Positions 2,259 to 60,822 of a stretch of DNA of 64,000 bases are shown here, piece by piece. The stretch lies in contig NC_043004.1 in NCBI RefSeq assembly GCF_006345805.1, positions 72,168,001 through 72,232,000 on the forward strand, given 5' to 3'. The translations under genes were made by a program, and so were the position numbers. Source of the DNA: Octopus sinensis (lineage: Eukaryota). The stretch's first letter is position 1. Each line of letters starts with the position of its first letter. Under the pieces are notes generated by a model. It did not search any database. It was given only the letters and a program-made list of their open reading frames with translations, and was not told the origin of the DNA.

Positions 2259-2432
2259 CTAAGATGAAACTTAGGAAATATGTTGCATTGTATTTAATAA
2301 TTTCAAAATCGAGTCAGTGTTTATCTTAGTACTCTGTACAGCATACTTCCGTTAAAATCGTAATAAGGCCTTTTCAAATCCTATCTTTGCACTTTCATCT
2401 AAATCATTGATTACCGTTTATAGCTGTTGCAG

Positions 2433-2524
2433 GTGAAAAGTGGCAGAAAGTGTTTGTGATGACCGAGAAAGCATTTAAAAAAAGTCCTCTCTATTTATAC
2501 TGGGACAGTTTGCCTATTGAAAAG
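2433..2524 (+). CDS. Paralog 1, coding exon a (92 nt, phase 1 to 0) of an uncharacterised multi-exon gene
   Basis: tgttgcAG|gt...gaaaag|GTaaaa; open frame (G)EKWQKVFVMTEKAFKKSPLYLYWDSLPIEK; 17/30 aa identical to 48172-48263 with the same length and phases. Confidence 0.9.
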
Positions 2525-2949
2525 GTAAAACATTTTTTTGAAATTTCGAAATGACTCATTTAATTGACAACTTTTCAAGTCCATGTTTCTTTTCTTATTT
2601 TAATGCATATCTGTTTCATAACTAGATTATCCAGAGTTCTAGTATCCGACGAGTATAATCTGAGAGAAATATAGCTTCTATTTCTAGAAGGTGATATGAC
2701 CATATAGAAACTCGTTTTGTTGAAAGATGTTGACAGTAGAAGGAAATGTTGCATGAGATCATATCAAATAGTGTAAAAGATTTTTCTATTAGGTTGTTAA
2801 GAAATTTCTTGCGGAATATTTAATTTTGGTTTTAGATGATGTATTTTCAATTTCATTTTCGTTAAAATACTATGACTTTATATATAAAACCCATTTTTCG
2901 CTCTATCTAATCGTGTCGCTCTTTTTCTTTTACAATAGTTAGGCCATTT

Positions 2950-3780
2950 TTTCCGGAACGTTGAATACAACATGGAGAAAAAGCAAATTTGCACAATTTT
3001 CTTATTCCAGTTCAAGCTAGGACAAAAACCTGCTGAAACAGCTCACGAGATCAACGATGCGTTTGGCTCAAGAACCACTAATGAACGTACAGCACAATGG
3101 TGGTTTAAGAAAGTTCGTAGCGGTGACGAGAGTCTTAAAGATGATAAGCGTAGTGGTCGGCCATCGGATGTTGACAACGATCAACTAAGAGACTTAGTCG
3201 AAGTCAATCCACGCACAACTTTTCGAGAGCTTGCTTCTGAATTAAACATAATGTATACGACAATTTCCAACCTCTTGAAAGAGATTGGAAAAACAAAAAT
3301 ACTTGAGAAATGGGTGCCGCACGAATTGAACGACAACCAAAAAAAACGTCGTTTGGAAGTGTCGTCTTCCCTTCTTTTACACAACAAGAACTACCCGTTT
3401 CTCGGCCGGATTGTGACTTGCGATAAAAAGTGGATTCTTTACGACAATCGGCGATGCTCAGCTCAGTGGTTGGACGCCGAAGAAGCTCCACGGCACTTCC
3501 CGAAGCTAAAGTTGCACTAAAAGAAGGTCATGGTGACTTTTTGGTGGTCTGCGGCCGGTCTCATCCATCACAGCTGTTTGGATCCAGGCGAAACCATTAT
3601 GGCTGAGAAGTACTGTCAGCAAATGGATAAAATGCATAAGAAACTCTGACAACAACATTCAGCATTGGTCAATAGAAAAGGGCCATGTCTTCTCCAGGAC
3701 AACGCTCGGCCGCATGTTGCACAACTGACCCTACAGAAGTTGAACGAATTGGGCTACGAAACTCTGCCTCATCCTCCATA
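2950..3780 (+). mobile_element. Mariner transposase relic, 3'-truncated
   Basis: ORF 2972-3520 with WVPHEL and VTCDKKW, then LLQDNARPH and HPPY, cut by (TA)n; internal stops. Confidence 0.9.
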
Positions 3781-5990: not shown

Positions 5991-6931
5991 GGTTCTTCAT
6001 GATCTCATACTTACAGACAAAATGTTTCGCAGAGTAGGAGCTATTTTATACATTTCCAGGCATTTCTTAATCCAGCTAGGTGGTAGGCTATCAAAAGCTT
6101 TTTTATAGTCTATCCAGGCTATTGACAAATGTTTGTGTCGTTTGTGACAATCTTCTAAGATCATCTTATTGATGAGTTGCTGATCTTTACAACCACAAGA
6201 TCCACGTCTACATCCTTTTTGTCCATTAGGGAATATGCTGCTTTCTATTAAAGAACTATAAGTATATTCAGTCAGGACAAATGTTAGCGCTTTATACGTT
6301 GTTGTTAAGCAGGTTATGGGTCGATAATTTTATTATTATTATAATTATTATTATTATTGAGTGAGAGAGCAGTTCATGCCATCAAAGTGACACTGGGGTA
6401 AAATATACGAAGCCCAATATACCCATCATGACTACCCGTCTGATAAAGGTACACCAGGCACATGCATCACAACCATATGTGCGCGACATGGTGATCTCAT
6501 ATCAAGATAAACAGCACATGACCTTGCAGGTGGGGCCCAGTTAGAATTTTCTTCAGGTTGAGTAGCCCATCCCGCTCAAACGGTCCCCGAATAAGGGTTG
6601 TTTAAGGATGTTGAAAGAACCACCCATGTTTCCAGAGGTGAACTATTCAAACCCCAAAGCATCCCTCTCAACACATGGCTATGATGCTCCCCCACTACTT
6701 CTGCTCGTGATCAGAGATGCACATATCGTCAGCCACTAAGGGACATGCTCAACTGGTTAAGGTCAAACAACTGACAAGCAAATCTGTGGTATTGAGCAGA
6801 ATATTTGCTGTAGCCCATCTTTTATACCAAGACAAAACAATGTACATGATAACACTTCCAATCAGTTAAGATCAGAAGCCATGAGAGCCACTGCTTGGTA
6901 CTGCATCAGTATTATTATTATTATTATTATT

Positions 6932-6993
<62 letters not shown>

Positions 6994-7411
6994 ATTTATT
7001 AATATTCAGTAGTTCTATTTTTATTATGTGATTTCACTTCACTACCGAGCGCAGCTCTGTGTGCCTTGGGTATGTGCTGTGGTTTGCTGTGATGCTCTGA
7101 TGGTTACTGTATTGAAAGTGTTCTGCGTAGGATGTGTGCAGTGCCTGGTAGTGCAATTTTCTGTATGTTATATGTGTTTGTAAGTCTTGATGTTTTTGCT
7201 ATGTATTTCTCTGAATATTTTTTTATCATGCGTAATGCACCTACTATGATAGGAATTGTTTTTGTTTTTAGATTCCACATTCGAGTTACCTCTATTTCCA
7301 GGTCATTGTATTTTGAGAGTTTCTCCATTTCTTTTAGAGACACGTTGTCATCTGCTGGTATTGATACATCAATTAGAAAGCATTTTTCTTCACGATCTCT
7401 GACAATTATTA

Positions 7412-7444
<33 letters not shown>

Positions 7445-7458
7445 CATTATTATTATTA

Positions 7459-7516
<58 letters not shown>

Positions 7517-7795
7517 GAAATTTATTGATTGAGGGAACAGCGTATGTCATCAAAGTGATACAAATATAATAAGCCTAATATACCAATCTTGAATACCCGT
7601 CTGGTAATGTTACATCAGGTACAGGCATCACAACCATATGTACGCGAAATGGTGATCTTACATCGAGATAAACTGTGCATGACCTTACAGGAGGGGCCCA
7701 GTTATATTTTCCTTCGGGTTAGTATCCTATTTTCCTCAAGAGATCCCTGAAAATTTGTTATAAGGATGATGACTGAAACACCCGTTTCATCATCA

Positions 7796-7835
<40 letters not shown>

Positions 7836-7857
7836 TACCATCATCATCATCATCATA

Positions 7858-7889
<32 letters not shown>

Positions 7890-9280
7890 GATTACTATTA
7901 TTCAGTAGTTTTAATTTTATAGCGTGTTTTCTCTTCACTACCGAGCGCAGCTCTGTGTGCGTTGGGTATGTGCTGTGATTTTTTGTGATGCTCTGATGGT
8001 TACTGTATTGAAAGTGTTATGCGTAGGATGTGTGCAGTGCCCAGTAGTGCAATATTCTGTATGTTGTATATATTTGTAAGTCCTGGTGTTTTTGTTATGT
8101 ATTTGTCTGAATATTTTTTATCATAGCTTTGGTTTCGCGAAGGAGTCGGACATGACCACTTTGACTATGGAGTCCTATCTACTCCAGTTTTGAAATCAGA
8201 GTACTGTATTCCTTCACATAGACATTATGATTATTATTGCAATTTTATTGCCTTTCCACATCTTCTAACGCTGGACATGTACTACAGTGTCAGCTGTTCA
8301 CTACCAGTGAACTAAGGTAACACCTCATATTTTTCGAGCACCTTCCGGAGTATTAGAGCGGTTCCAAGCAGTACTGTTTTGTGCAAGTGCTACACCCTTA
8401 TTGCAGCCCCTATTTCTTCCACGTACTTCTCAAGACTTTTACTGACTGTTCCCAGGGCTCCGACAATAATTGGTACTACTGCTACTTTTTTCATCGACTA
8501 CAACGGCTAAACTTCCCATATCTCTCAACTTTTCTTTCTCCCTTATCGCATACCTTGTTGCCAGCTGGGCATGCTATATCTATGATTCAGCATAGTTTGT
8601 TTTCTTTCTCAATTACGACTATGCCGGCTTCCTATTCTCTATCTCATGGTCGCACTGAATCATAAAATCCCATAGGATCTTTGCATTTCTATTTTCAACA
8701 ATGCCTTTGGGTTGTGATCGTATCAATTTTTTGCTCTGTCAAGTCCATACTTGTTGCAAAGTGTCCAATAGAAAAGCCTGGCTATATTGTCGTAGCGTCT
8801 CTTACATTACTTCTGGGATAGTGGCGCACATTGGCTGGTAAAATGCCATAGAGATTCATAATTTTGTCCACAGATTCTGCACTTATCACTTTATGATGTG
8901 TTGTCTATTCTGTATTTTATGTAGTTTGTTCTTAGTGCTTTCTTTTGGGCAGCACAGATTAGAGCCTCTGTTTCCGTTTTCAAATCACTTTTAATCATCC
9001 ACAGCCATCTTTTCTCTCTGTATGTCTTATCTTCAACATCCCTACGAAATTGTCTATGCATTCTTTTCTTTACCCACCTATTTTCAGTTTCATTCGTTTT
9101 CAATTGCTTGTACAGTGCTTTATCTTTGAAATCTTTCACTCTACACTGGTCTGACCTTCTTACATCTAATAATAGCGGTTCTGTGGAATTTTTTACGTAC
9201 CATGCTTTGTTGTTTTCTTCTGCTCTAATGATTTGTTCACATTCAATAAGTCCTATTATTATTATTATTATTATTATCAA

Positions 9281-9337
<57 letters not shown>

Positions 9338-9802
9338 CATTATTATTATTATTACTATTGAGTGAGCGAGCAGAGCATGCCATCAAAGTGACACTGGGGT
9401 AAAATATACGAAGCCCAGTATACCCATCATGACTACCCGTCTGATAAGGGTACACCAGGCACATGCATCACAACCATATGTGCGCGACATGGTGATCTCA
9501 TATCAAAATAAACAGCACATGACCTTGCAGGTGGAGCCCAGTTAGAATTTTCTTCAGATCGAGTAACCCATCCCGCTCAAAAGGTCCCTGAATAAGGGTT
9601 GTTTAAGGACGTTGAACGAAACACCCATGTTTCCAGAGGTGAATTATTCAAACCCCAAAGAATCCCTCTCAACACATGGCTATGATGCTCCCCCACTACT
9701 TCTGCTCGTGATCAGAGATGCACATATCGTCAGCCACTAAGGGACATGCTCAACTGGTTAAAGTCAAACAACTGACAAGCAAATCTGTGGTATTGAGCAG
9801 AA

Positions 9803-9850
<48 letters not shown>
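5990..9850 (-). mobile_element. Cluster of 5'-truncated R4/Dong-like retroelement pieces separated by (TAA)n tracts
   Basis: RT piece 5990-6320 (GSCGCKDQQLINKMILE...AWIDYKKAFDS); REL-endonuclease ends 6995-7415 (CFLIDVSIPAD...KYNDLEIE) and 7890-8125; 8330-9255 (KTETEALICAAQ); non-coding 3' repeats 6358-6912, 7530-7785, 9358-9805. Confidence 0.85.
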
Positions 9851-11061: not shown

Positions 11062-11278
11062 ACCCTCTCACTTTCGCTGCTACTCTTCTAAACTTTTTCT
11101 ACTTTGTTTTAGAACTCTCTTGTGGTTTAAGTGTCACTTCTCCACTTCCTCTCTCTATCTCTTTCTTGTTCTTCTTCTCCCTTACTATATCTCATCCTTA
11201 TCTTCTTTCTCTTTCTGCAAATCACTGTTGTCTAACTCTTAGACTGTTTATGAATCCCCATCAACTTTCTATTTGCAG

Positions 11279-11427
11279 GTGGCATTTCGGCTGAACATTC
11301 CTAATATTCGCACATTCATTTTCGATGGAAAAGGGACAAATTCTACATCGTGGTACCAAGAAGATAGAGTCATTTCTCATCCATTTCCTAACGAAAATAT
11401 TTCACTGACAATCACATTCAACAATAA
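11279..11427 (+). CDS. Paralog 1, coding exon b (149 nt, phase 0 to 2)
   Basis: tttgcAG|gtg...aataa|GTatat; VAFRLNIPNIRTFIFDGKGTNSTSWYQEDRVISHPFPNENISLTITFNN; homologous to 54186-54334; phase matches exon a. Confidence 0.9.
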
Positions 11428-11779
11428 GTATATATTATCTCATTATTATTTATTAACATTTTCAATTATTTAATGATAACAATAATAATTATCGCATTGA
11501 CAAAGAATAATCACACATTTTTAGAGATGGTTGAAGGTGATTTTATTGACTTCAGTAATTAACATGTATTATTTTATTTGCGCTAGAATGATAAATGGCA
11601 AGTATGGCCTCGTGGAATTTCGCACTCAAGAGGTTAAGGAAGAAACTAACACACCCTTTGTTGTTTTGACACCTTGCCGATTCACACATCACCATTTTCA
11701 TAGCCTGTGACCAAATAAAGTTTATTGTTCTGCATGCTTCTCCTTGCAGGCTACACACTATTGCCATTGGTGTTGCAGT

Positions 11780-15760: not shown

Positions 15761-15891
15761 ACACATTCAATAATCTGAAAGGTGAAAAATAAACTCTTCG
15801 AATAAATTAAGCAGAACTGTTTGTCGTAAACATAGTAGTTCAAGTTTTCATTATGATGAAGTTTATTAAATGTATCGTTGTAATATATTAG

Positions 15892-16001
15892 TTTCAGCGA
15901 ACCGAATTTTCACATGACTTGGGGAGGAAAGAATTCTACTAACTTGATGGAGGCCAAAAAGAATAATGGAAACTACGTAATGCATTACAAAGGCTTTGGT
16001 A
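15892..16001 (+). CDS. Paralog 1, coding exon c (110 nt, phase 2 to 1)
   Basis: atattAG|t ttc agc gaa ccg...ttt ggt a|GTatgt; (N)FSEPNFHMTWGGKNSTNLMEAKKNNGNYVMHYKGFG; homologous to 58151-58260; not in the ORF track because it is too short. Confidence 0.85.
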
Positions 16002-18573: not shown

Positions 18574-19453
18574 TCATGTTAGGTCGATGATGGGGAGGAT
18601 GGCTTCCCTTTTCAAATACTGATAGGGCACAGAAAGTGTATCAAAAGCCAGCTGGAGAAGATGTTTTCCTGGGGCTACAAGCTACAGTAACATCCACCCT
18701 TAGCGGTTAGCCACATTTAGATGGCAAATATACTTCACACTTCACGTTGTCGTGCAGTTACTGTTTATACCTCGTTCAGAGATTTATTATATATATATAT
18801 ATATATATATATATCTTCGCTATAAGTTCATTTATATGTATAGTGTACTAGTGTACTGTTTTGTGATGCTCTATCACATGTGGTGTGTAGTCCGACTTCC
18901 AGCCCCATGGGTGACTAGATATCTTTGTAGCTTACTTTTGTTTCTGTGTCGGAAGGAAGATTTGTGATTAATATAGCGATTTTTAAATTCGCCTTTCGTT
19001 ATAGATGAAAATGAAATATCTAGCATTAAAACTTTTCTTAAAATTCTTACTTAATATGTAATAAAAGTTAGAATAAATACATTTCACCTTATCATGTACG
19101 GAAAGGAAGGGAATTACATTAATACTGGCTTGAAGACGAACGAAAACTTTTATCGTAGAAGCACGCTTTAGTTGAGAAATGTTTCTTTTCAGATATATTT
19201 TAAAGGCACCGGATGAAACCCACAGAAGTTGAAAGTATATCTGTGTAATGCATACATTTTTTTATATATAATTTACTTGGACGGTTCGATAATTCATAAT
19301 AGCGATTCCCTTAAATTTTTTACGTGATGCGTAAAAGAAAGAAGCAGAAATCCTCTGACTACATCACCTCCATATTATTGTGTGTGTGTGTGTGTGTGTG
19401 TGTGCGCGTGTGTGCATACACCCAGAGTAAGATTGATAGATAGATAGATAGAT

Positions 19454-19502
<49 letters not shown>

Positions 19503-19687
19503 TGCTCGTGTGTATATGTATAGCATATATGTATGTGTGTATGTTTGACCTTACACACATACATACATGTGTGTATATATGTATGTACGTATGAATGTAT
19601 GTGCATATGTATGTATGCATGATCATTGAGAAACACAGTTAACTTCATTAATTGTTAACAATATCTTTCCTTAATTTTTTCTTTCAG

Positions 19688-19737
19688 GTGTTTCGGGTAC
19701 CATTCAGAAAATTGTCATTGCAGTCCTTTTCGTGTAG
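19688..19737 (+). CDS. Paralog 1, terminal coding exon d (50 nt to TAG)
   Basis: ttctttcAG|gt gtt tcg...ttc gtg TAG; (S)VSGTIQKIVIAVLFV*; homologous to 61052-61101; AATAAA at 19756-19761. Confidence 0.85.
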
Positions 19738-20054
19738 AAGACGCTTTATTCTAGAAATAAAATATATATTCGTACATATATGCAATCATGCATAATACAT
19801 ACATGCATACATATATACATACAAAAATACATTCATAAAAACATACAAACATAGATAAATGCATACTTACACACGTACATAAATGCATACATACATAAAT
19901 ACATGCACATATACATAGGCAGGTAGATTAACTACTACAGAATCTAAGAATAACCAAATTTAGAGTAGAGTAAAATATAGTGTGAATCTATGTTCGAAAA
20001 GCAATAGCATAAATGTAGATACATTAAATCATTATAATAAAGAGAGTAATACTA

Positions 20055-37907: not shown

Positions 37908-37968
<61 letters not shown>

Positions 37969-38239
37969 TAAGAAAGTTGGTTTGTGAAAGCACGTGATTG
38001 AATATATAGAAAATAGTAAAAAGTGAAAAAACTACAGAAGGCTTAAATGTTAAAAAATATATATTTGCGTCAATATGTCTGAAGAATATTAAAAATTTTT
38101 TTTTTGCTTTATAATGACATAATATAGAAGAAAGACCGGTTTCGCGTTTAGCTTTTCAAATTTCTTGCGACGTTATGTTTATGTTGAACAGTGTTATCGT
38201 TATGTTTATGTTCAAAAGAGTTCTAAATAAGGGGAGGTA

Positions 38240-38760
38240 ATGAGTAATTTCTTCCGGTGTAAGGGAGATAATCGCTTACAAATTTCCCCGAAAATACTAC
38301 CTTACATATCTACATACAACCCCAGAAACAAAGAAGCCTTCACCATCATCACCCAGAATTTACCAATACCTCATAAGGACCCCAAATTAAAGGAAATTCT
38401 AAACATACACCAAATCATTAAAAGCTACAAACAACCTAAATCACTTAAAAAGATTCTCACAAAGGCAAAATTGTCTTCTGATATTACGGATGCAAAAGTA
38501 AAAAAATGTGGTAGATCGAACTGTGCAACATGTCCAAACCTGCTAGAAGGATCAGAATACCTCTTTAAAGAGGGACAGAAATTCAAGATCAAATCTAACT
38601 TTACTTGTGCCTCTGAAAACATAATTTATGTCATAAAATGCTCGGGCTGCCACCAAGACTACGTGGCATCCACGGGACTATCACTCAGACGTAGATGCAC
38701 ACTGCATCGACAACAGATTGCATTCCCAGAATACAGAATGATACCTTTTAGTATCACGTC
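38240..38760 (+). mobile_element. Penelope-like element (linker Cys motif plus GIY-YIG)
   Basis: KCGRSNCATC...FTCASENIIYVIKCSGC..DYVAST...HRQQI; an inverted degenerate hammerhead-like GAAACCGGTC lies at 38128-38166 on the minus strand. Confidence 0.85.
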
Positions 38761-39309
38761 TATATAGGCACATACTCGCATGTACGCACACACGCACACA
38801 TCTATATACGCACATACCCGTACATACCCGCACACACGCACACATACACACGCGCGCGCAAAAAATCCATATACACGTCTATATACACACAGGGAAAATG
38901 CATGGTGGAAGGTCGAATACAGGAAAATTTTGTGTAAAGAATATATAAGCAATAAACCTATAAACCAATATCTCTATAAATATGTAAGATATATATGTAT
39001 AAAAAATATAAATAAAAATATATAAGAAATATAAGTAAAAAGCATAAAGAGATAAAATGCTTGTGCGTAGACACAAAATAGAAAGCAAGTTCTATCTGTA
39101 GTTTCGGGGGGGGGGACAAAAATGTAACAAATATTTGGCCACTTGTGGGCATGTCCCAAAAAGTTCAGTTCTTGAATTCAGACATGTAGCGGGGTCTAAG
39201 CTGCTTTTCCAGATGAGCCATCTTTCCATATCACATAGACTGCACTTTCCACTGCCGTTGGTGTAGGGCTTATACTTGGCTAAGATCTTCCAATGGATGT
39301 AGTAACTGA

Positions 39310-39545
39310 CAACTTTATCTTTTAATGACCATATATGACTGGATAATTTGGTCGTTTTCCTTTTATCCTAGTGCTCAAGGTGTGATTATTGAACCTGGCA
39401 TTGAAATTACCTTCTGTAAGGCCCACGTATTTCTTCGTCGAAACCGTGTCTTTAGTGGGTATAGAGTCCACGGTGGCTTCGTAAATGATGGTCAGGGATA
39501 TGCAAGCTCCATTTAGCGGGCACAAATGTTTATCACTGCAAGGTC
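39310..39545 (-). mobile_element. Penelope-like GIY-YIG fragment
   Basis: CPLNGAC...IIYEATV...KYVGLTEGNFNARFNNH. Confidence 0.8.
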
Positions 39546-41018
39546 CGAGACCATCATTTACGAAATTTGTTTGAAATTTCAGAAACTTTAAGGGAAATTG
39601 TTTTCTAAACTCAGGAATTCATAGTATCGTGCAAAAATAAAATAAATAAAATTGGGGTTAGGTTAAGGCCTAATTGATTCTTATTTTTAGCACATTTCTC
39701 GATTAGAGTACAGGCAGCAGATGGGCACAAGCAGCTGAACACTGCAGCGATGCACGAGCTATCGCGTATTATAAGGAGCATACAGGAGGCAGTTGACTAA
39801 GTTAGTTATTATATATGGCTGAAAAGTGAAGGCCCGAAATGACTCAAAAGCCATAACTTGCCGACTGGAAAATAGCATCGATAGGTGAGGCTGGTTGGTA
39901 CTTAAACAGCTTTGCTGCTTGGCAGGTGGGCTGAGGAAACCATCTCGATCATTGCGCGCCCTCTTCCCCAGATAGCTAGTCGGCTCTGGCTGCTGGAGCT
40001 GAAACTAACGCAACTCTTTTGGAAAGTAGGTTTAGAGAGATCGTGGGTCAAAGCTTCGCGCCCTTACCCTCCATTGGTCAGTTGAAGTATAGATGGAGTC
40101 ACGTGACAGTTAGCTGGCACTGGCTGCTGGAGCTTACAGGAGAGTAATAAAAGGGAAATTTGGTAAGGTAGTCGTTCGCTCGATGACATTCGTTGATGCT
40201 GCATCGAAGAAACCAAAGAACAGAAGGCCAAAGAAAAGATTTAAAAAACTCACTCGACATCAGAGCTGAAGACACCTCCGAAAGGTGGGGAGCACGTCGA
40301 CAGCAGTACAGGAGTAGGGGCTGAAACCGGATGTGGCTCCTCCTGATGATGTCTTTAGCCATTGAATCCTTTAAAGGAGCTGTTAGCGAACTTTGAAACC
40401 TGCTTGGAATACCCCTTGTCAATATGTACTCTCTCGCAGATAAAAGAGTTCCTATGCTTGGTTTCTTACTATAGAAGCAGGCATGAATGTATCTGTGGTA
40501 TACGATTGTCTAAAATTACCCTAAATTTTCAAACTTTAAAAGCTAACTCCTTATTTATTGATTTATTTCGAATATGAATTTCAAAGCAGTGATTAGTATA
40601 TAAAACCATATCATTACACCCAATATGAAATCAATTCGAGCAGAAGTTGAAGAGACTGAAAGTTAACAACCAAACAGAAAAATCCCCATTCCTTCTTGTC
40701 TTTCCATCACCTCCTCTTCTCCACCAAATACACACAGAAATACCCACATAACTCAATCAACCTTCATACTGGTCAAAAGGGATGAGTAACCCCAGTTGTA
40801 CATTCATTAATGTTATATCGCCAGAAGAGATGAATCCATGAAGATGATCAACCCGATACTCAAGGATAGTATATCATCCCAGGAATACGGACTGTGATCA
40901 TTAGAGACATATGATTTGTGGAAACACGTATAGCGTTTATGGGCATATTCAAAACATTTCCTGTTAACAAATTTAAAAGATATATGCGTGTGTATGTGTG
41001 TATATACATATATATGTA

Positions 41019-41590
<572 letters not shown>

Positions 41591-41788
41591 GGAGTATTTA
41601 GTATTAAAGCAAATTTCACAATATAAATATATAAAATATATAAATTAGAGAAAAAAACACTATTATTCAATTTTGTGATCTAGTTTTAATATATATTTTA
41701 TTTTTTATTTATGATTTGGTTTATGTCCATCATTGTTTGAATTGCATAATAGTGGTTTTTCTCTAATATATATATATAATAGATAGTA

Positions 41789-41842
<54 letters not shown>

Positions 41843-42598
41843 TCATATATGAGTACAGGACATCACTAACGGCTCAAACAGCATGAAATACGTAAACAAA
41901 TGTTCAAATGCATAAACAACGAGAAACAAATGGAGAACAGGAAAGTAAACATAGAGAAAGGACTCTTCATCAGTTGTCGGCTGTCTATCTACTCCTCATT
42001 TTGAACATTCAGCGAAATTATGAGTTTTCAAAGACAGTTGATCCCAGAAATCCTAAAATAAAACTTAGGATTTATGGAAGGTAAAATTTGGGAACAAAAA
42101 CATGATAGTGGAGACATGCAAGGAACCCGAGCAAACATAGAGGGTCGTCAGACCAGAAAAAGAGAAAAATAGTGAACGCTGTGAGAAATATTTTTTTGAA
42201 AAGAGAAAAGATACAAGAGGGAGAAAAAACGTTCGCATTTTTGAACGTCCGTGCAGGAAAAGAAACATGGTCATGTGAGGAAAAGAAAGAATGACGATGG
42301 TCACGTGTGAGCAACAAGAGAGAGAGAGAGAAGTGAGAGGGACAGATAGAAAACGGTGAAGGAGGGCGAGGAGAAAAAGCGAATTAGAGCAGGGTGGAGG
42401 AAGAAAACAGTATAGAGAAGAGAGTTTACTTGTCCTGTTCTCCATTTTTCTCGTTGTTTATGTATTTAACCCGTTTGTTTACGAATTTCGTGTTGTTTGA
42501 ACAGGTGATTTCTTGTACCTATATGTGCATGTGTATACAATATATTATTTACTATTTATTATCTAATTGAACGCCACGCATCCATTTTCAAGTAAATT

Positions 42599-42631
<33 letters not shown>

Positions 42632-43329
42632 TTATATATATATATACATACAGACAGGCCAGACCTGACAGTCAGACAGTCAGACATACAGAGATTGTTT
42701 AAAGTAGTGTAGAAATTCTATATATTGATCTTAAGAAAAGAATTTAGTCAGAATTAGGATAAAAATTGTTGGCTTGGTGCTTTAGATCCTTTCAGGAAGT
42801 CATTAATGAATGTTCTCTTATAGAAAGTTCATGTGAGCTAGTTGAAAAAATCGGGAGCTGAATGTTTTTCTTGGATTTTAGAAATACGTTTTGAGAATGG
42901 TTATTAGAGATGGGTTTTTTTTTATTTTGTATTTATATGTGGGTATATATGAATGCGGAATCGTGCGTGTTTGTGACGAAATTCGGAGGTGCGGTTAGAA
43001 ACAGAGGTGAGTAAAGAGAAGGAAAGGGACAAAGAAAATAAGGAGGGAAGAAGGAAAGAAATAATGAAAGAAAAAAAAGAAACAAACAAACAAACAAACA
43101 AAGGGGTGTTTTTTAAGTAAAAAGGTCACCTTTTGTGTCAATTGCTTATGAATTTTTGGTTAGTTGTCGTCGAATTGTTTTGGAAGGTTTTTAATGTGTG
43201 CGTGTGTGTGTGCATCTGTCTGTCTATTTTTAAGCTTATGTAAAATGTGTGGATGTGTATGTGTGTGAGTTTAAGCTTGTGTGTGTGTGTTGGTTGCTTG
43301 GTTATTTACATGAATTGCTTCAGTTATTT

Positions 43330-43830
43330 TATTAATAATAATGAGAACGTTATTCATAATTATATCCAGTAGTGATCTTGTTTGGATACTCCTGGAAATT
43401 AAATTTTTAATAAGGATTTCTCATAATAGTTTAGTTGAAATAATTTTTTTTTATAGGATGTAGTTCCATTGCCTTCCGGTAATTTGGATCATTCCATGAA
43501 CATTTGTAGAAAGGAAGGATCTTGAATAAGTTGTTTGAATCCAGTTGCCTGCTAATTATTTCTGCCTGATGTGTTGTCTATATGTTTTTGCACGTTGACA
43601 AAGGGAATTGTTGGTTTCGCCAATGTAATTCCCTTTGCAATTGGGGAATTTCACGCAGAATATTACATTTTGTGTCTTGCGGTTCATATTTGCATTCGTT
43701 TGGAAGGAGAACCCACCTTTAAAATTTATACTAGAATTAGTGTTCAGGTATTTGAAATTGTTGTAGTTGCTACATACTCCACATCTATTGTTTTCGAATC
43801 ATTTCACAGAGAATTCAGAAAATAGTAAAG
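43330..43830 (-). mobile_element. Penelope-like GIY-YIG fragment
   Basis: Minus-strand NMNRKTQNVIFCVKFPNCKGNYIGETNNSLCQRAKTYRQHIRQ. Confidence 0.8.
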
Positions 43831-43844
43831 TGTGAAAAAACGAC

Positions 43845-44512
43845 AGAAGCCACTGATGTCGAAAAACGAACAGTAAGCATAATTAAATCTCAGAATGAGA
43901 TTCAAACAGGGACAACAATCCCGAAACTAGTTCGAGCGTATCACTCAGGATTGCGAGGAAGGGATAGCCTCTCTTTACAAATACTCCAAGGACACTGATA
44001 TTGTGTCTAAAGCCAGCTAGAGACGAAGATCCCTTGGGGCTATAAAGCTACAGTAACACCCCCTCCCCAATATGGTTAGCCATGATAAGATGGCTTCTAT
44101 ACTTTACATTATCGAGCGATTACTGTTTGAATCTCATTCTGAGATTTAATTATGCTTACTGTTCGTTTTTCGACATCAGTGGCAGACGCCATTAGAAAAC
44201 CTTATATATGTTTGCAAAGAGGCCTTCACTTTCATCGCGACCTGGTGGTTACCGCCCGTTGACGAGGGACAACAATCCCGAAACTAGTTCGAGCGTATCA
44301 CTCTGGCTTGCGAGGAAGGGATGGCCTCCCTTTGCAAATACTCCAAGGACACTGATATTGTGTCTAAAGCCAGCTAGAGACGAAGATCTCTTGGGGCTAT
44401 AAAGCTACAGTAGCACCCCCTCCCCAATGTGGTTAGCCATGATAAGATGGCTTCTATACTTTACATTATCGAGCGATTACTGTTTCAATCTCATTCTGAG
44501 ATTTAATTATGC
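43845..44512 (+). mobile_element. Hammerhead-bearing tandem terminal repeat (357-nt period) with a short 5' inversion
   Basis: agggacaacaatcccgaaac at 43908 and 44265; 43845-43905 is the reverse complement of about 44118-44182 and runs into the Penelope fragment; homologous to 18401-18790. Confidence 0.75.
44253..44295 (+). ncRNA. Minimal type I hammerhead motif (related subfamily; C3U core change)
   Basis: cgcccg TTGACGA GGGA-caacaa-TCCC GAA ACTAGT T cgagcg; 4-bp stem II, palindromic stem III ACTAGT, GUU triplet, 5/6-bp stem I. Confidence 0.7.
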
Positions 44513-44536
44513 TATATATATATATATATATATATA

Positions 44537-45804
44537 CGAGGGGCGTTCAATAAGTAATGCCCCTGAACCACTTCCCATACCAGTAGAGCAACGGAACTTG
44601 GCACAGTTATTGGTCTTTTTCTACATAGGAACCACTCAGAGTTATGCATCTCTCCCATCGTTTGATCCAGCTCTGGAGACCGTTTTTGTAAAATAGCCCA
44701 GCTTGGTACTCCATCCACGACGTGACTTTAGAAATCAAGGCTGCATCATCTGGGAAATGCTTTCCTTTCAAAAACAACTTCATGGCTGGGAAGCGGTGAA
44801 AATCAGAGGGTGCAAGGTCAGGAGAGTAGGGGGTGGGGGAGGAGTTCATAGCCGCACGCTTGTGCTTCTGATCTGGCGACACGCGTGTTGTGGACCGGAG
44901 CGTTGTCCTGCAGGAGGAGGATGCCTTCGCTGATCTTGCCCCGCCTCTTGATTTTGATAGCTTCTCTTAATTTCCTCAAAAGTGAAGCATAATAGGCTCC
45001 TTTAATTGTGGTACCCTTCTCCAGGAAATCTGTCATTACTACTCCGTCCTGGTCCCAGAAGACTGTGAGCATGACCTTGCCTTCTTTGGAGGAGGTGAGT
45101 CACGGTGCTTCTACTGCATTGACTGGGGTTTGGTCTCTGGATCATAGTGATGGACCCAGGTTTCATCCTGTGTAATCAGTCTTTTGAAAACGTTTGACTC
45201 ATCTTCTTGGTACGTCTCCAAATTCATCCTCGAGCACTCGACGCGTTCTTGCTTCTGAAAAGGTGTGAGCAACCTGGGAATCCATGTGGCAGACACCTTT
45301 TGCATATGCAAATGGTCATGAATGATAGTTTCCACAGACCCGGTACTAATCTTGACCTCATGGGCTATTTGGCGAATAGTTATGCGTCGATCTTCCAAAA
45401 TTGCAGCCTCAACTTGACGGACAGATGCCTCATCAATGACAGAAGGGGGGCGACCAGATCTGGGAGCTGTTTCCACAGAGTTCCGACCGTGTTTGAATTC
45501 ACGATGCCAGCGTTTTACAAGGTCATATGATGGGGCATCGTCACCATAAGTTACTTTCATTTCATCAAAAGTCTCCCGTGGTGTGCGTCCTTTCAAATAC
45601 AAAAACCGGATCACTGCTCGACACTCAACAGGCTCCATTTCACACTTGACTCAGTTCAAACACCTGTAAATCAGAAACCATAATTAGTTCAGAGCTGCAA
45701 TTTGCCACCTATTCTATAGAGATATAAGTAATTGCACATGCAAAATTTCAACTAGATCAAACACCTGGAAGTGGGTCAGAGGCATTACTTATTGAACGTC
45801 CCTC

Positions 45805-45805
<1 letters not shown>
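44537..45805 (-). mobile_element. Near full-length mariner (irritans-like), 1269 bp, inactivated
   Basis: 39-bp TIRs cgagg(g/a)cgttcaataagtaatgcc..., flanking TA; TQDETW, LLQDNAP and YSPDLAPSDF (D,D34D-type) split over three ORFs. Confidence 0.95.
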
Positions 45806-45871
<66 letters not shown>

Positions 45872-45969
45872 CAATTGAGGATAAACTCTTTAAAAGAAAT
45901 TATCAGTAGTCAGCGTGAAAAACCTCGTAAGAGAAAAAATCCGTAAATTCTTCCTCTTTGAAAATATTC

Positions 45970-46233
45970 ATTTATATTATATTGAGGGTACTACTATTCG
46001 TAGATACCAACACGCTAAGAGGGACCTATGCGGTCAAAACTACTAAAAATAAACAAAATTTTACCGAATGCAAAACTTCAAAACACATCATTTTAAAAAA
46101 GAATTTTTAAAATGATGTGTTTTGAAGTTTTGCATTCGGTAAAATTTTGTTTATTTTTAGTAGTTTTGACCGCATAGGTCTCTCTTAGCGTGTTGGTATC
46201 TACGAATAGTAGTACCCTCAATATAATATAAAT
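45970..46233. repeat. Near-perfect palindrome: 130-bp arms, 1 mismatch, 4-nt loop
   Basis: 45970-46099 vs 46104-46233. Confidence 0.9.
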
Positions 46234-46399
46234 ATATATATATATATAAGTTGAATAACCTTAAAACATCTGGTTTGCACGTTTTTTGTTGTTGTATTTA
46301 AGAATTGTTTTTACCTTGCTGAAGTGTGTTAAACATTAAAAAAATTGAAAAAAATATTAGTGTGTTAAACATTAAAAGAAATTTGGAAAAAATATATAT

Positions 46400-47700
46400 C
46401 TGTATTTTGTATAAGCCAACATGCCCGGTAAAATGAATGGAGCCTCGAGAATCGGACAGGATCTTAAAAGAGATAGCAAGCAATTATCAACACTTATGTC
46501 AGTAATGTTAACAGAAGCAACAATCCTACAGGAACTGGAAAAGGAATTGACAGATAAGAAAGATATATCTACAAATCTACATTCAGAAATCAAGGATTTA
46601 TCTAAGACCCTATCAGAAGTGGTGAAAGCTCCAAGAGAAAGCCTAACAGCCAACATGGATACAGGAACTTAACGAAACAAATTTAGAAAAAGTATCCTAT
46701 CGAAAAAGAAAACAAATTTGGACAATCCGCATTATCAAAACATTTTTAACATCATGAAAATAAATTTGCCAATCATGAGAGAAAGGGAAAACTTTCAAAG
46801 CGTGATTACTAATCAAACACTTATCTTAAGCAAAATTCTACATGAAAAAACAGGATAAAGCATTCACAGCATCCAAGTGTAATGATAATAAATGCGGAAA
46901 GTGTCAATACATACATACGGGTAGATCCGTTAGAAGAAAAATAAAATGGACAGATTTTGCAAATGCAGATATGAACTGCAAAAGCAGTAATTTGATCTAC
47001 TGTATTAAATGCTCTAATTGCGAAGAGTTATACATTGGCGAGACAGGGAATGCATTATCGGAACGTCCACGATACCACAGACAACAAATCAGGAACACTA
47101 ATCTTCGCCAAATTCCATTGAGCGAACATATTGAAGCATGTGGTCAGAAAATGTTTCTAATTATTTTTCTTTCCACAAACTACATGACACAAGTGAGGTT
47201 GGAAGAAAGATAAAACAAAAACGTTTTAAGAAAATTTCAAACCTGTTCTGAACGGAAATAACAACAATAATATAACAAACCATCAATGATGTGGATTACA
47301 AAATATCATTAACATATGAATATAAACAGAAGACTCCCACTAATTGATAGAAAAACGATCGAAACCAACTACGTTTGCTCACTCATAAGACCAATACATG
47401 TAAACCGGAAGCTAATTGGTTCAAATAAAGGCAGGATCTATGCCAGTAACGTCAGTGCTCCCGGCAAACCATGACTTTTACGCTGCATGCGGATTGGACA
47501 AACCGTATTCGAAAGATTCAACTTGTTGGAACCTTCTAAAAGATATAAAAAAGAAAGAAGTTAATTGTTTCACTACAGTTGTCAATAACACAGCTGTCAG
47601 TTAAATGCATTTTGAAATCTGATGATTACTACGAACGTATGAAAGCGCTAATTGAACTTTATGAACGTTACATAAAATTTTCTTTTAATGTCTAACGAGA
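46400..47700 (+). mobile_element. Penelope-like element 3' part with terminal repeat
   Basis: KCNDNKCGKC...NCKSSNLIYCIKCSNCEELYIGETG...HRQQIR; hammerhead-like motif at 47613-47654. Confidence 0.85.
47613..47654 (+). ncRNA. Degenerate hammerhead-like motif 3' of a Penelope ORF
   Basis: aaat CTGATGA ttac TACG-aa-CGTA t GAA AGCGCT A attg; palindromic stem III, stem II out of register. Confidence 0.45.
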
Positions 47701-47819
47701 AAAGATATCAATACCAATGAGTTGTAACACTTTCTTTGCATATTCAATCCAATATCACTGAAGCAGAGACGAAACAAAATGGTTTCAAGATTTGGCAGAT
47801 GGCCGGCAGTTTTAAAGGA

Positions 47820-47975
47820 AATGTAAGTCGATCACTGATATTTGTTTTATCGACCTCGAAAGGATGAATGGCAAAGCCACCACGACGCCATTTGAACTCT
47901 GAACGTGAAGATGAATGAAATACCGCTAAGCATTTTGACCAGTGTAATAACGATTCTGCCATTTCGCCTCCTTAA
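47820..47975 (-). mobile_element. Nin-like SINE at the paralogous position to 1790-1935
   Basis: Same SINE consensus, followed by the conserved intron block (ctaag.tga...ttagga) that precedes exon a in both paralogs. Confidence 0.7.
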
Positions 47976-48171
47976 TAATAAATAAATAATGATAATCTAA
48001 GTTGAGGTTTAGGAAAATATTTTATTGCATTTAATAATTTTAGAATGAGTTCAGTTAATTTTCACTGTACTGTGTGCTACATGTTTCCTTTAATATCTTG
48101 ATAACGCTTTTGCAACACCCTGCATGTGCAGTTACATATAACTCATTGATATCCATTTCTGGTTGTTTCAG

Positions 48172-48263
48172 GCAACAAGTGGCAGAAAGTATTGAAGATG
48201 ACCAGTATCTCATTTGAAAGAAATCCTATTTATTTATACTGGGAGAATTTGCATATCGAAAAG
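48172..48263 (+). CDS. Paralog 2, coding exon a (92 nt, phase 1 to 0)
   Basis: gtttcAG|gc aac aag tgg...gaaaag|GTaatt; (G)NKWQKVLKMTSISFERNPIYLYWENLHIEK. Confidence 0.9.
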
Positions 48264-48619
48264 GTAATTCAATTTGGAAATTTCCAAAAGATGTACATTT
48301 AAATAACAACTTCTCAGTTCCCTATCGCTTGGGATACATGACATTTTTACCTTTCCCTGTCGATATTGCAATGATACATGTAATTAGTGCTGTTGGGTTT
48401 GTCCATGTTCTTTCTGCTTTACATTCAAACAAGATCCAGTTTTGCTTCCTTGTCTTATTTTCGCACATAATATATCTATAACAAGATAATCCAATGCATT
48501 TTATTAGGTGGTACTGTATACTCTGAGAGAGGTTTGCCTTCTATTTCTTGACGATTAAGTGGAAACATAGAAGTCCATTCTGTTGTAAGATGTGACGTTG
48601 GAGTGTGGCATAAAATTAT

Positions 48620-49139
48620 ATCAACTATAGTGGAAGTGTTATCATGCAAATTGCTTTGTCTTGGTATAAAAGATGAGCTACAGCAAATAATCAGGTCACT
48701 ACCACAGATTTGATTGTCAGTTGCTTGACCTTAACCACATGAGCACGTTCCTTAATGGCTGACAATATGTGCATCTCTGATCAGGTGCAGAAGTAGTGGG
48801 GAGCATCATAGAATGTGTTGAGAGGAATTCTTAGGGATTTGAATTATTCCCCTCTAGAAACATGGGTGTTTCATTCATCATCCTTAAAACAAATCTTCTT
48901 CAGGGATCTCTTGAGCAAAATACGCTACTCACTCTCAAGGAAAATACAACTGGGCCCCACCTGTAAGGTCATGCACTGTTTATCTCGATGTAAGATCACC
49001 ATTTCGCGCACATATGGTTGTGATGCCTGTACCTGGTGTAACATTACCAGACAGGCAGTCAAGATTGGTATATTAGGCTTCTTATATTTGTATCACAGTT
49101 TCACTTTGATGACATACGCTGTTCCCTCAATCAATAAAT

Positions 49140-49198
<59 letters not shown>

Positions 49199-50858
49199 CT
49201 GACAGCATACAGTAGAAATCGTGAGGGACATTTTCCAGGGGGACTGCCTGTCCCCACAGATCTTTGTACTGTGCTTGACACCACTAACACTGATTCTGAG
49301 GAAAGCAAAAGCTGGGTACGTATTCAAAAGCCGCCAACAAAAAGTCAACAATTTGTTATTCATGGATGACTTCAAACTTTATGGTGAAGATGACGCTCAA
49401 GTCAGTTCCTTCATTGATACGGTGTATACCTTCATTGCTGATATCAGAATGGAGTTCGGACAGAGAAAGTGTGGTGTGTTAGTCTTGAAGAGAAGCAAAA
49501 TCAAATGTATTGACGGGTTAACGATACCGTCGGGGGAGGTTATGAAGCAGATAGAGAAGACGGGCTATAAGAACATGGGGATACTGGAAATGGATAAATT
49601 GATGGGGAAAAAAATGACAGAAAAATTTATGGTGGTGTACTTGCGCAGACTGAGATTGATATTCAAGTCAAAATTAAATGGACGGAATAAGATTAAAACT
49701 ATCAACACCTGGGCGGTTTCACTCCGTAGATATGGAGCAGAGGTAATCGCATGGACAGAAGACGAACTAAACAGCTTAGACAGAAAGACAAGGAAGTTGC
49801 TGACTAGATATAGTTCACTCCAACCAAAAAGTGACACAGATAGACTATATGTAACAAGAAGAGGAAGCGGACTTACTGGATGCGAACACAGCATTATAGC
49901 AGAAAAAACATAACATGGTATGTAAAAGAAATGCCACAGAACCGCTATTATTAGAAGTAAGAAGGTCAGGCTTGTGTAGGATGGAAGATTGCAAAGATAA
50001 ATCACTGTATAAGCAACTGAAAACCAATGAAACTGAAAATAGCTGGGTAAAGAAAAGAATGCATGGATAATTCCACAGGGATGTTGAAGATAAGGCAGAC
50101 AGAGAAAAAAGATGGCTTTGGATGACTAAACGCGATTTAAATCTGGAAACGGAGGCTCTAATCTGTGCTGCCCAAGAGCAAGCATTAAGAACCAATTACA
50201 TCAAATACAGAATAGACAACACATCAGAAAGTGATAAGCGCAGAAATTTTGGACTAAATGGTGAAACCGTATGGCATATTAACAGTCAATGAACGCCACT
50301 AGCCCAGAAGGAATATAAAACACGTCATGACAATATAGCCAGGCTTGCCCATTGTATGCTCTGTAACAAGCAAGGTCTTGACAGAGAAAATTGGTACGAC
50401 CACAAACCCGAAGACATCATCGAAAATGGAAATGCAAAGATCCTATGGGATTTTATGATTCAGTGCGACTATGAGATAGAGAATAGGAAGCCGGACATAG
50501 TCATAATTGACAAAGAAAGTAAACTATACTGGATCATAGATATAGCACGCCCAGCTGACAACAAGGTATGCGATAAGGTACAAAGAAAAGTCGAGAGGTA
50601 TGACAGGTTAGCTTGGGAGGTAAAGCAGTTGTTGTCGATGAAAAAGGTGGTAGTGGTACCAATAATTGTCGGAGCCCTGGGAACATTGAGTAAAAATCTC
50701 AAGAATACGTGGAAGAAACATGGGCTGCAAACAGCACTGCTTGGAACCGCTCGAACACTCCGGAAGGTGCTTGAAAACTAAGAGATGTTACCTTAGGTCA
50801 CTGGTAGTGAACAGCTGAGAATGTAGTACATCTCTAATATTAGAAGCTGTGCAAAGGC

Positions 50859-50895
<37 letters not shown>

Positions 50896-51101
50896 TTTTC
50901 TACTCTAGGCACAAGGCCCGAAATTTGGTGTGAGGGGCCAGTCGATTAGATCGACCTTAGTGTACAACTGGTACTTAATTTATCGACGCCGAAATGATGA
51001 AAGGCAAAGTCGACCTCGGCGGAGTTCAAACTCAGAACATAAAGACAGGCGAAATTCTGCTAAGGATTTCGCCCGGCGTGCAAACGTTTCTGCCAGCTCG
51101 C

Positions 51102-51169
<68 letters not shown>

Positions 51170-52319
51170 AATAATAATAATAATAATAAACTCTGAGGAC
51201 TGGATGTTAAAACTTGTCTCAAAACGTGAAAACAAGAAAGCATCATACTCAGTAACAAAACAGACAAAGGAATATCTAAGTGAATTCCGAATACAACAAA
51301 TTTCGGAATTAGAGATAGACATACAAGAAACAAGCTAAGCGCATGAAAACCTGTGCTAAAACTGCGGCTTTAGATATTCTGAATGATAAATGGCAAGAAA
51401 AACCTCTCTATGGCAAATACCCAAAGAGAGCGAATAATGCAGATGTTGATAAAGCCCTGACCCATCAATGGCTTAAAATCTGAAACAGAGGGGTTTATCA
51501 TAGCAGCTCAAGATCAATGCCTACCGACAAGAAACTAGCAGACCAACATATTAAAGAACGGTAGTAGCCCAACATGTCGGGTATGTCAGCAACAAAATGA
51601 AACTATTGATCATGTTGTCTCCAAGTGCAGTCTTCTAGCGCCTACAGAGTATCTCAACAGGCATGATAGAGCTGCACAATATATTCACTGGGTAATCTGC
51701 AAAAACCTGGATTTGCCCCATGAAAAAAATGGTGGGAACACAAACCACCCCCAGTGCTTGAAAATGACCACATCTCCCTCCTCTGGAACTTCCTCATTCA
51801 AACTGACAGAAAGATAGATGCAAATAGGCCAGACATCATATTGAAAGACTTCAAACAAAGAACATGCCTCCTCATTGATATGACTGTCCCAATCGATATA
51901 AACGTATCCGTCAAGACCTACCAAAAACTGAGCAAATATAAAGATCTTGAAATAGAAATCAGCAAAATGTGGAGCCTGAAGACTAAAACAATATATGTTG
52001 TCATAGGTGCCCTGGGAATGATAGCAAAAGGGGCTGATTACTACCTAACTCAGATACCAGGACATGACAGAAATTCAAAGGATAGTGCTCATGGGAACTG
52101 CTCATATCCTACGCAAAATATTTTCTATGTAATCTCAAGGTTTAAAACAAACATAATTTTTTTTAGACATCCACTAGTACAACACCAAAAAAAAAACAAC
52201 CAAATATATGGCACACTAGGCATAACAACAACGTGAACTTCCAGCCTGTTGTCTCTTGAGGTCTCTGGGTGAGACTTGGAGCCAACTTGTACAAATATAA
52301 AGCAAAAGTCAAACATAGG

Positions 52320-52362
<43 letters not shown>

Positions 52363-52415
52363 TAATAATAATAATAATAATAATAATGATGATGATTATG
52401 ATGACGATGATGATG

Positions 52416-52463
<48 letters not shown>

Positions 52464-52860: not shown

Positions 52861-52899
52861 CTCGACATATAGAACGTTCTAGCTACGTCCCGCCTCCGA

Positions 52900-54185: not shown

Positions 54186-54334
54186 GTTGAATTTCGATTA
54201 ATCGCATCTGGCGGATATTACAAATTCATATTCAATGGAGCAGGGACGAATGCTACATCGTGGTACCGAAATGATAAACTCATTGAACATAGTTTGTCGA
54301 GCAGTTATCAGTTCAACTTTACATCCAACAATGA
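54186..54334 (+). CDS. Paralog 2, coding exon b (149 nt, phase 0 to 2)
   Basis: tttgcAG|gtt gaa...aatga|GTatat; [49 protein letters not shown]. Confidence 0.9.

Positions 54335-60750: not shown

Positions 60751-60822
<72 letters not shown>

Follow-up and report, generated by a model that had tools for sequence, protein, structure and literature searches.

Accelerated divergence of exons relative to their introns in a tandemly expanded octopus gene family

The introns of snake-venom PLA2 genes are reportedly more conserved than the exons. Accelerated evolution of crotaline venom PLA2 and of other venom multigene families is attributed to Nakashima et al. (1993, 1995) where these authors are cited in PMC6062510. 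The octopus family described here resembles venom PLA2 in that tandem genes for (probably) secreted proteins have fast-evolving coding regions, KA/KS values near or above 1 (for octopus not significantly above 1 overall), and an expanded copy number (PMC6062510); it differs in its protein, which is unrelated, and in the placing of the acceleration, which affects four short loop patches of an otherwise constrained framework and not the mature protein as a whole. A second precedent is provided by the trappin multigene families known from pigs, cows, and armadillos, where coding regions changed far more rapidly than did introns, non-coding exons, and flanks, and where dn and ds were both accelerated in some lineages (dn/ds 1.0-1.9), the ds component being ascribed to 'unknown mechanisms' (PMC2831891). 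The trappin rates are numerically very close to the pattern in the octopus family. However, trappins are small mammalian WAP-domain host-defence peptides present in few copies, compared to at least 60 matches to one exon (exon b) and a different domain in octopus. The phenomenon is of a kind known from snake-venom PLA2 families and trappins, and a link of the octopus family to venom, immunity, or gamete recognition would be one of analogy.

Diversified recognition families of invertebrates, such as the mollusc fibrinogen-related proteins (FREPs) and the sea-urchin 185/333 proteins, are large, clustered, and specific to their lineages, and the secreted proteins that they encode have hypervariable regions. 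The octopus family appears similar in being large, clustered, lineage-specific, and hypervariable. The best structural likeness of its domain, which was not significant, was to fibrinogen-like domains (TM 0.47) and legume lectins (TM 0.25). Unlike FREPs, the octopus domain has no Fibrinogen_C match, lacks cysteines, and spans about 135 rather than about 220 residues. An un-annotated repeat homologous to octopus exon a and most of exon b is present in amphioxus EGF/C-type-lectin proteins labelled HMCN1 (P0009; hhalign 95%, E=3e-8), with the common motifs W..VF, ..W(D/E)SL..K(R/K)V, and F(I)F(N/D)G.G....SWF, and a ZP-domain protein of amphioxus and a protein of a sea star contain related stretches. 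The homology covers the N-terminal half of the octopus domain. In contrast to the octopus domain, these stretches occur as one or two modules in large mosaic proteins, contain cysteines, and are longer, with no sign of expansion or hypervariability. A few large expansions are familiar from cephalopod genomes, for example those of protocadherins, zinc fingers, and GPCRs. The octopus family, distributed over three chromosomes, appears to be a further large cephalopod expansion that was not previously described. Its proteins are 'uncharacterized' in databases, literature searches on the octopus apple/PAN family and on the LOC identifiers found nothing relevant, and both family and domain appear to be new to the literature searched.

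The window, meaning the whole 64-kb stretch of DNA that was analysed, corresponds to C8:72,168,001-72,232,000 of the 2.72-Gb Octopus sinensis genome. It is AT-rich, and microsatellites and transposon remnants are abundant. Comparison of the window with itself revealed colinear plus-strand matches about 42 kb apart, indicating a tandem duplicate, whose members we call copies A and B. Each has four coding exons (a-d) with canonical splice sites and matching phases. These are the last four coding exons of two tandem family members. The features are as follows, in window positions.

2433-2524, plus strand: copy A exon a (92 nt; phase 1 in, phase 0 out), encoding ..EKWQKVFVMTEKAFKKSPLYLYWDSLPIEK
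11279-11427, plus strand: copy A exon b (149 nt), placed by splice sites and phases, with framework VAFRL..FIFDGKGTNSTSWY..TITFNN and two hypervariable patches
11294-11314, plus strand: copy A HV1, NIPNIRT, inside a hypervariable patch of about 8-9 codons
11381-11407, plus strand: copy A HV2, PFPNENISL (model loop 123-129)
15892-15998, plus strand: copy A exon c (107 nt; phase 1 out)
15914-15940, plus strand: copy A HV3, MTWGGKNST (model loop 150-155)
19688-19737, plus strand: copy A terminal exon d
19688-19713, plus strand: 5' half of exon d (HV4 in the five-way alignment), between the last strands of the model
19714-19737, plus strand: conserved 3' half of exon d, last beta-strand (..VIAVLFV and stop; model strand 182-189), with the stop TAG at 19735-19737
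19738-19757, plus strand: conserved start of the 3'UTR, AAGACGCTTTATTCTAGAA, directly after the copy A stop
48172-48263, plus strand: copy B exon a
54186-54334, plus strand: copy B exon b, with HV1 IASGGYYK at 54201-54224 and HV2 SLSSSYQF at 54291-54314
58151-58260, plus strand: copy B exon c, with HV3 IDYTHGPSDD at 58173-58202
61052-61101, plus strand: copy B terminal exon d, ending ..NEILINELVISVLFK and stop

Independent support for this exon model comes from the next copy upstream, P4, which encodes the NCBI protein LOC118764387 (P0021): that protein agrees at every residue with the predicted exons a-d, and its terminal exon and alternative acceptor are those that had been predicted. Exon a is conserved upstream of exon b in 11 of 11 other copies examined, with the boundaries CAG/G..AAG/GTAA. 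In P4 the exon a acceptor has changed from CAG to CGG (C8:72121870-72121890), and the NCBI model instead uses a TAG that lies 9 nt farther upstream and lengthens the protein by three residues (IVS). Two in-frame acceptors, TAG/15892 and CAG/15898, are available to exon c of copy A at a distance of 6 nt from each other (15886-15898), and the choice between them could add or drop two residues (FS); the TAG homologous to that at 15892 is used in B, P4, P10, and the O. bimaculoides orthologue. In word-index protein searches, A (101 aa) matched no annotated protein in the size ranges searched, and B matched only 64%-identical relatives, its own annotated protein not being found in those size ranges.

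A search of open reading frames against each other found no signal-peptide/PAN 5' exon inside the window, and none was found between copies A and B. The exon belonging to copy A has an open frame and was located outside the window, 3.4 kb upstream (C8:72164461-72164619). Copy B's own 5' exon, comprising the signal peptide and PAN-like module, is absent from this assembly (window 37943-48011); in the O. bimaculoides orthologue of B it lies about 3 kb upstream of exon a, a place that is occupied in O. sinensis by some 10 kb of unrelated sequence. Exon c is left in phase 1 and exon a is entered in phase 1, making splicing from exon c of A to exon a of B phase-compatible, and LOC118764386 (P0001) is an annotated protein with PAN and two domains that is spliced c to a. 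On sequence grounds, B may be a second cassette of A's transcription unit, in which case A and B would be parts of a single gene, or it may be a recently orphaned copy. The NCBI model of the O. bimaculoides gene LOC106874575 (L051 9702-10081, CM046608.1) begins at an internal methionine; the open frame upstream spans the full PAN-like module to the signal peptide (MRTSIQCHLRLKSLQAFALIFFIPPISC...), right after an assembly gap, suggesting that the model is probably truncated at its 5' end.

Relatives of exon b number at least 60 in the O. sinensis genome, and are clustered on C8 (71.5-74.6 Mb), C27 (15.9-17.4 Mb), and C4 (11.0-11.5 Mb). Family copy counts are approximate, since unplaced contigs (C9471, C11158, C10491, C13085, and others) with match scores identical to those of C27 positions look like uncollapsed haplotigs or assembly duplicates. 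Segment exchange occurs in the family, as indicated by P5 and P6, in which exon b is identical at 145 of 146 nt on unrelated exon-a backgrounds, and by P3 and P5, which are 99% identical around exon a and 87% identical in exon b. The whole assembly contained no closer match to the B exons than P4 (72% in exon c, 85% in exon b), and every lineage has its own exon changes, suggesting that import from a surviving paralog does not explain B. Two copies on C4, P9 (C4:11065885-11066055) and P8 (C4:11523128-11523298), are 457 kb apart, 99.6-99.7% identical in 700-nt flanks, and different at 1 of 244 exon nt (exons a and b); P9 has an in-frame TAG in exon b and P8 is open, consistent with a very recent duplication of which one copy has just been disabled.

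A profile of exon b, searched exhaustively with HMMER, recovered full-length relatives from O. sinensis and O. bimaculoides. They are encoded by a short first exon (MNLK), an exon for a signal peptide and a cysteine-rich PAN/apple-like module, and exons a-d, an architecture with which the proteins are probably secreted. The PAN-like module scored below threshold (best PAN_1 score 18.6 bits against a cutoff of 21.4; PF00024/PF14295), with weak matches in 6 of 10 members, and a PDB profile search of the N-terminal module gave only weak apple/MIC4 matches (E 0.018-0.9). Some members carry the UniRef label 'Apple domain-containing'. AlphaFold models are all-beta (pLDDT 80 and 77, pTM 0.74-0.75) and predict for exons a-d a cysteine-free beta-sandwich of about 135 residues with HV1-HV4 in alternate inter-strand connections. 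Judging by the strand order of the models, and given an up-and-down sheet, the patches are probably at one end of the sandwich, and could form a single variable face. For the a-d domain, neither a Pfam family nor a PDB relative could be identified, whether by sequence or by fold. Pfam searches with the partial A and B proteins gave only sub-threshold noise (DUF4847, PCC_BT), Foldseek searches with the full and domain-only models gave no significant match, and DUF7922 and D8C, which are present in distant relatives, were undetectable in the octopus proteins. We rejected a fibrinogen-related domain, for which there was no Fibrinogen_C Pfam match and the Foldseek hits to ANGPTL3 and L-ficolin had E 0.04-0.24, TM 0.46-0.48 (threshold TM >0.5), and rmsd 7-8 A, and likewise a legume-lectin/concanavalin-like fold (Foldseek E 0.03-0.3, TM 0.2-0.28, not significant). 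A GPI anchor or transmembrane reading of the hydrophobic C-terminus was rejected as well, this segment being the last beta-strand of the model.

An earlier note, based on hand counts in copies A and B, proposed that the exons are more diverged than the adjacent introns, with divergence concentrated in probable loops. Its count of 28/50 identical nt in the terminal exon (19688-19737 compared to 61052-61101) was exact, with the copy B exon starting at 61052, not 61053, as was its count of 39/44 in an intron block just upstream:

19618-19661, plus strand: conserved intron block of copy A, 27-70 nt upstream of the terminal-exon acceptor
60987-61030, plus strand: conserved intron block of copy B, upstream of the terminal exon

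Overall A-B exon identity is 64.8% (a 76.1%, b 63.7%, c 60.7%, d 56.0%). Protein identity is 43.8%, for which the note had about 42%, and the figure of about 80% for the 60 nt after the exon c donor holds for a gapped alignment (about 78%) but not for an ungapped one (27/60). The compensating one-codon indels are real, in the form of two 3-nt indels in exon b that leave both exons at 149 nt. Alignable A-B intron blocks, which were selected for alignability, are 74.4% identical compared to 64.8% for exons (P=2e-4). However, only 10-21% of each intron is alignable, the rest being transposon insertion or lost signal, and the pair is saturated (dS about 0.5-0.6), so that it is weak evidence and could not alone establish the effect. 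The note's own caution that its blocks had been picked was justified. Its 44-nt block stands out as extreme, at least 39/44 being reached in 10 of the 1786 44-column windows of alignable A-B intron (top 0.6%). Repeats common to the A and B regions in both orientations (for example, 6325-9806 and 48618-52903) explain much of the unalignable intron. Transposon remnants comprise the N-termini of two mariner-type transposases (HTH_48, with E 5e-13 and 2e-9), one Tc1-type DDE_3 domain (2e-11), and one RVT_1 reverse-transcriptase fragment, at these positions:

2939-3520, plus strand: transposon remnant
45111-45650, minus strand: transposon remnant
62659-63279, minus strand: transposon remnant
49203-49913, plus strand: transposon remnant

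Positions 40813-41648 are about 800 nt of near-pure AT/ATT low complexity, and the 28-32 kb region also has low GC (0.21-0.29).

Closer comparisons for B were provided by two paralogs on C8 outside the window, P4 and P10, and by the syntenic O. bimaculoides orthologue. The introns of P4 and P10 can be aligned with those of B over almost their full length, at 78-93%, and the exon was less similar than the surrounding intron in all eight exon comparisons of B with these two copies. With simple repeats masked, K_exon/K_intron was 2.08 for B-P4 (Fisher P 5e-8), 2.30 for B-P10 (P 9e-13), and 2.06 for P4-P10 (P 8e-10), and it was 1.98 for B and O. bimaculoides. The central claim of the earlier note is thereby confirmed in four comparisons, with ratios of 2.0-2.3 and Fisher P from 5e-8 to 9e-13. 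In the three close pairs, exon c is 66-68% identical and its intron 80-82%, and no size-matched intron window was as diverged as exon c; the same was true of exon b in the two pairs with P10. A subfamily on another chromosome, C27, likewise showed exon identity below flank identity (P 2e-3 to 2e-6). Microsatellite inflation of the alignments was rejected as a sufficient cause, the effect holding with repeats masked, as was a difference in base composition or CpG, an effect of about 10% (estimated, not computed) that is not patch-specific, compared to a twofold excess.

The between-species evidence consists of one pair, B and O. bimaculoides LOC106874575 (P0002, L051), which is colinear with copy B from the upstream intergenic sequence through the 3' flank. 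Exons are 77.8% identical (K 0.263), introns 87.8% (K 0.133), and upstream intergenic sequence 87.0% (K 0.143). Introns and intergenic sequence did not differ (P=0.25), and exons differed from both (P=8e-8 and 2e-6), indicating that the excess comes from faster change in the exons and not from conservation of the introns. Since gene conversion cannot homogenise introns across species, this comparison also indicates that the introns are neutral. Two candidates for a second between-species pair were rejected: P0014 has no one-to-one counterpart, and P0027 has many equally good O. sinensis matches (81-88%), making its orthology ambiguous.

The excess is unevenly distributed within exons. Four hypervariable patches were defined: exon b contains HV1 and HV2, exon c contains HV3, and the terminal exon opens with HV4. 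The divergent peptides named in the earlier note coincide with these patches, which are inter-strand loops in the AlphaFold model. Across 20 copies of exon b, nucleotide diversity was 0.2-0.3 in the intron flanks, 0.07-0.14 at splice sites, and 0-0.2 in framework codons, compared to 0.45-0.73 in HV1 and 0.3-0.66 in HV2. Tree-based counts over 20 paralogs gave the following rates relative to intron divergence (Ki); in the rate analyses as a whole, counts are small (132 codons), and parsimony and NG86 are crude at saturated, multi-hit codons.

Framework: dN/dS 0.44-0.48 (P about 1e-4), dN/Ki 0.4, dS/Ki 0.85-0.9
HV1: dN/dS 1.65-1.78 (P 0.03-0.04), dN/Ki 2.3-2.9, dS/Ki 1.3-1.7
HV2: dN/dS 1.1-1.3 (not significant), dN/Ki 1.75-2.0, dS/Ki 1.4-1.7

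The framework is under purifying selection. Its synonymous sites evolve at the intron rate, so there is no exon-wide mutator, and one exon combines constraint with acceleration. In close pairs, dN was 1.9-2.3 times the intron distance (P<=4e-6), supporting the accelerated protein evolution that the earlier note had suggested, with dN/Ki of 0.7-1.3 in the exon b framework (pairwise NG86), 2.2-4.4 in exon c, 3.7-7.5 in HV1 (5-10 nonsynonymous and 0-1 synonymous differences), and 2.5-11.6 in HV2, although any compensating indels that went undetected within the patches would make the mismatch counts too high. Intron identity was 85-90%, compared to 68-82% at synonymous sites, in the pairs with end-to-end intron alignment, and dN/dS was not well below 1 (overall 0.8-1.2; HV1 1.65-1.78 in the 20 paralogs). 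Pairwise NG86 dN/dS was 0.83-1.18 overall, reaching 1.9 by ML, and was not significantly above 1. Synonymous divergence is also raised in close pairs (dS/K_intron 1.9-2.6, P 0.04 to 1e-4; HV2 pS up to 0.47-0.99), and classical dN/dS is therefore only about 1 outside HV1. The raised dS is not predicted by amino-acid selection alone. Possible sources of it are multi-hit codons, compensating indels that escaped detection, multi-nucleotide mutations, or a genuine patch-directed process. When the observed differences were placed at random, a stop-free frame resulted in 0.8% of trials for B-P4 and 0.5% for B-O. bimaculoides, and no frameshifts were observed compared to about 2-2.6 expected, showing that the reading frames are actively kept. 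No stops or frameshifts were found in A, B, P4, or P10, and A, B, P10, and O. bimaculoides have canonical splice sites.

Our best reading of these results, to which we assign a probability of about two in three, is diversifying selection on the predicted binding loops of a tandemly expanding, probably secreted family. The domain strands and the conserved NG(T/K)GTNSTSW loop are held by purifying selection and replacements in HV1-HV4 accumulate 2-7 times faster than intron or intergenic substitutions, most likely driven by diversifying selection on a putative ligand-binding surface. The analysis shows the rates, the division into framework and patches, the keeping of the reading frame, and the structure of the family and its genes, and from these secretion, a binding function, a common face for the patches, and selection in preference to mutation as the driver are inferred. 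The family would grow by tandem duplication with occasional segment exchange, and the outcome would be exons more diverged than their own introns.

An unlikely alternative is that a mutational or recombinational process aimed at exon patches, rather than selection alone, raised dS and dN together, through short-tract conversion from family members, multi-nucleotide or indel-mediated scrambling, or hypermutation. The raised dS/Ki of close pairs and the high pS of HV2 are what such a process would leave, exon b has been exchanged as a unit (P5/P6, P3/P5), B-P4 intron identity varies by block from 82% to 96%, and trappins offer a precedent for joint acceleration of dn and ds (PMC2831891). However, framework synonymous sites remain at the intron rate family-wide, HV1 combines 0-1 synonymous changes with 5-10 replacements, the assembly contains no donor for B exon b or c, the patch boundaries track protein loops and reading frame, and open frames would still require selection. 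The same uneven B-P4 blocks, together with the mosaic relationships in the C27 cluster and intron flanks that are 90-95% alike across several copies, could instead reflect introns homogenised by gene conversion among tandem copies, with exons retaining an older divergence because conversion there was selected against. We consider this decidedly unlikely, since B and O. bimaculoides show an equal twofold excess with introns at the intergenic rate, and selection for exon diversity would be needed in any case.

Under relaxed constraint, A, B, or both would be orphaned sets of exons or pseudogenes in decay, and the contrast between exons and introns would be noise from picked AT-rich blocks. In its favour, no annotated protein was located for either copy in the size ranges searched, this assembly has no 5' exon for B, A and B differ to an equal extent at the three codon positions, little of the A-B intron aligns (10-21%), and one family copy, P9, has an in-frame stop. 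Nevertheless, this explanation is highly improbable, and is already contradicted for the family and for the history of B: neutral decay cannot exceed the intron rate, which the exons exceed about twofold; framework dN/dS is 0.45; stop-free frames have P 0.005-0.008, with zero frameshifts; and the effect survives repeat masking and size-matched intron windows. A processed or decaying pseudogene was rejected, given that A, B, P4, and P10 lack stops and frameshifts, the exon rate is twice neutral, and introns are retained. A more elaborate possibility, which we regard as rather unlikely, is a germline-encoded, CDR-like recognition repertoire of cephalopods, in which dozens of tandem cassettes of one beta-sandwich domain would have the four loops at one end diversified by patch-directed mutation or micro-conversion together with selection, and would share one 5' exon, joined serially (c to the next a, as in P0001) or as alternative 3' ends. 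If so, one promoter would give rise to several binding specificities.

Few molecular signs of an arms race or of a diversifying repertoire are clearer than exons that outrun their own introns. The family members are candidate immune, chemosensory, reproductive, or salivary recognition molecules of octopus. The family also offers a tractable case for asking why synonymous sites accelerate alongside replacement sites, as framework and loop codons behave oppositely within one exon.

The intron block at 19618-19661 is non-coding in six frames, contains two TTAAC branch-point-like motifs, and is conserved in the five-way alignment of A, B, P4, P10, and O. bimaculoides; a search for structured RNA gave zero Rfam matches at the gathering score across the whole window. 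In the same alignment, HV4 (the first 26 nt of the terminal exon) is different in every copy from the acceptor onward, and the 3' half of the exon and the first 20 or so nt of the 3'UTR are conserved. In a family-wide search, the terminal exon was retained only in the local C8 subfamily. Microsatellites of (GATA)n and (GGAT)n occur at a matching position upstream of both terminal exons (19430-19505 and 60740-60900), suggesting that the locus has been retained since duplication. Family-wide, the 20-50 nt of intron beside the exon a and b splice sites have lower diversity (0.07-0.14) than deeper intron, for example:

2400-2432, plus strand: conserved flank upstream of copy A exon a
2525-2570, plus strand: conserved flank downstream of copy A exon a
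11260-11278, plus strand: conserved flank upstream of copy A exon b
11428-11447, plus strand: conserved flank downstream of copy A exon b

A TCATTGA-type motif lies about 25 nt upstream of exon a, and the conserved block that precedes the terminal exon contains it again.
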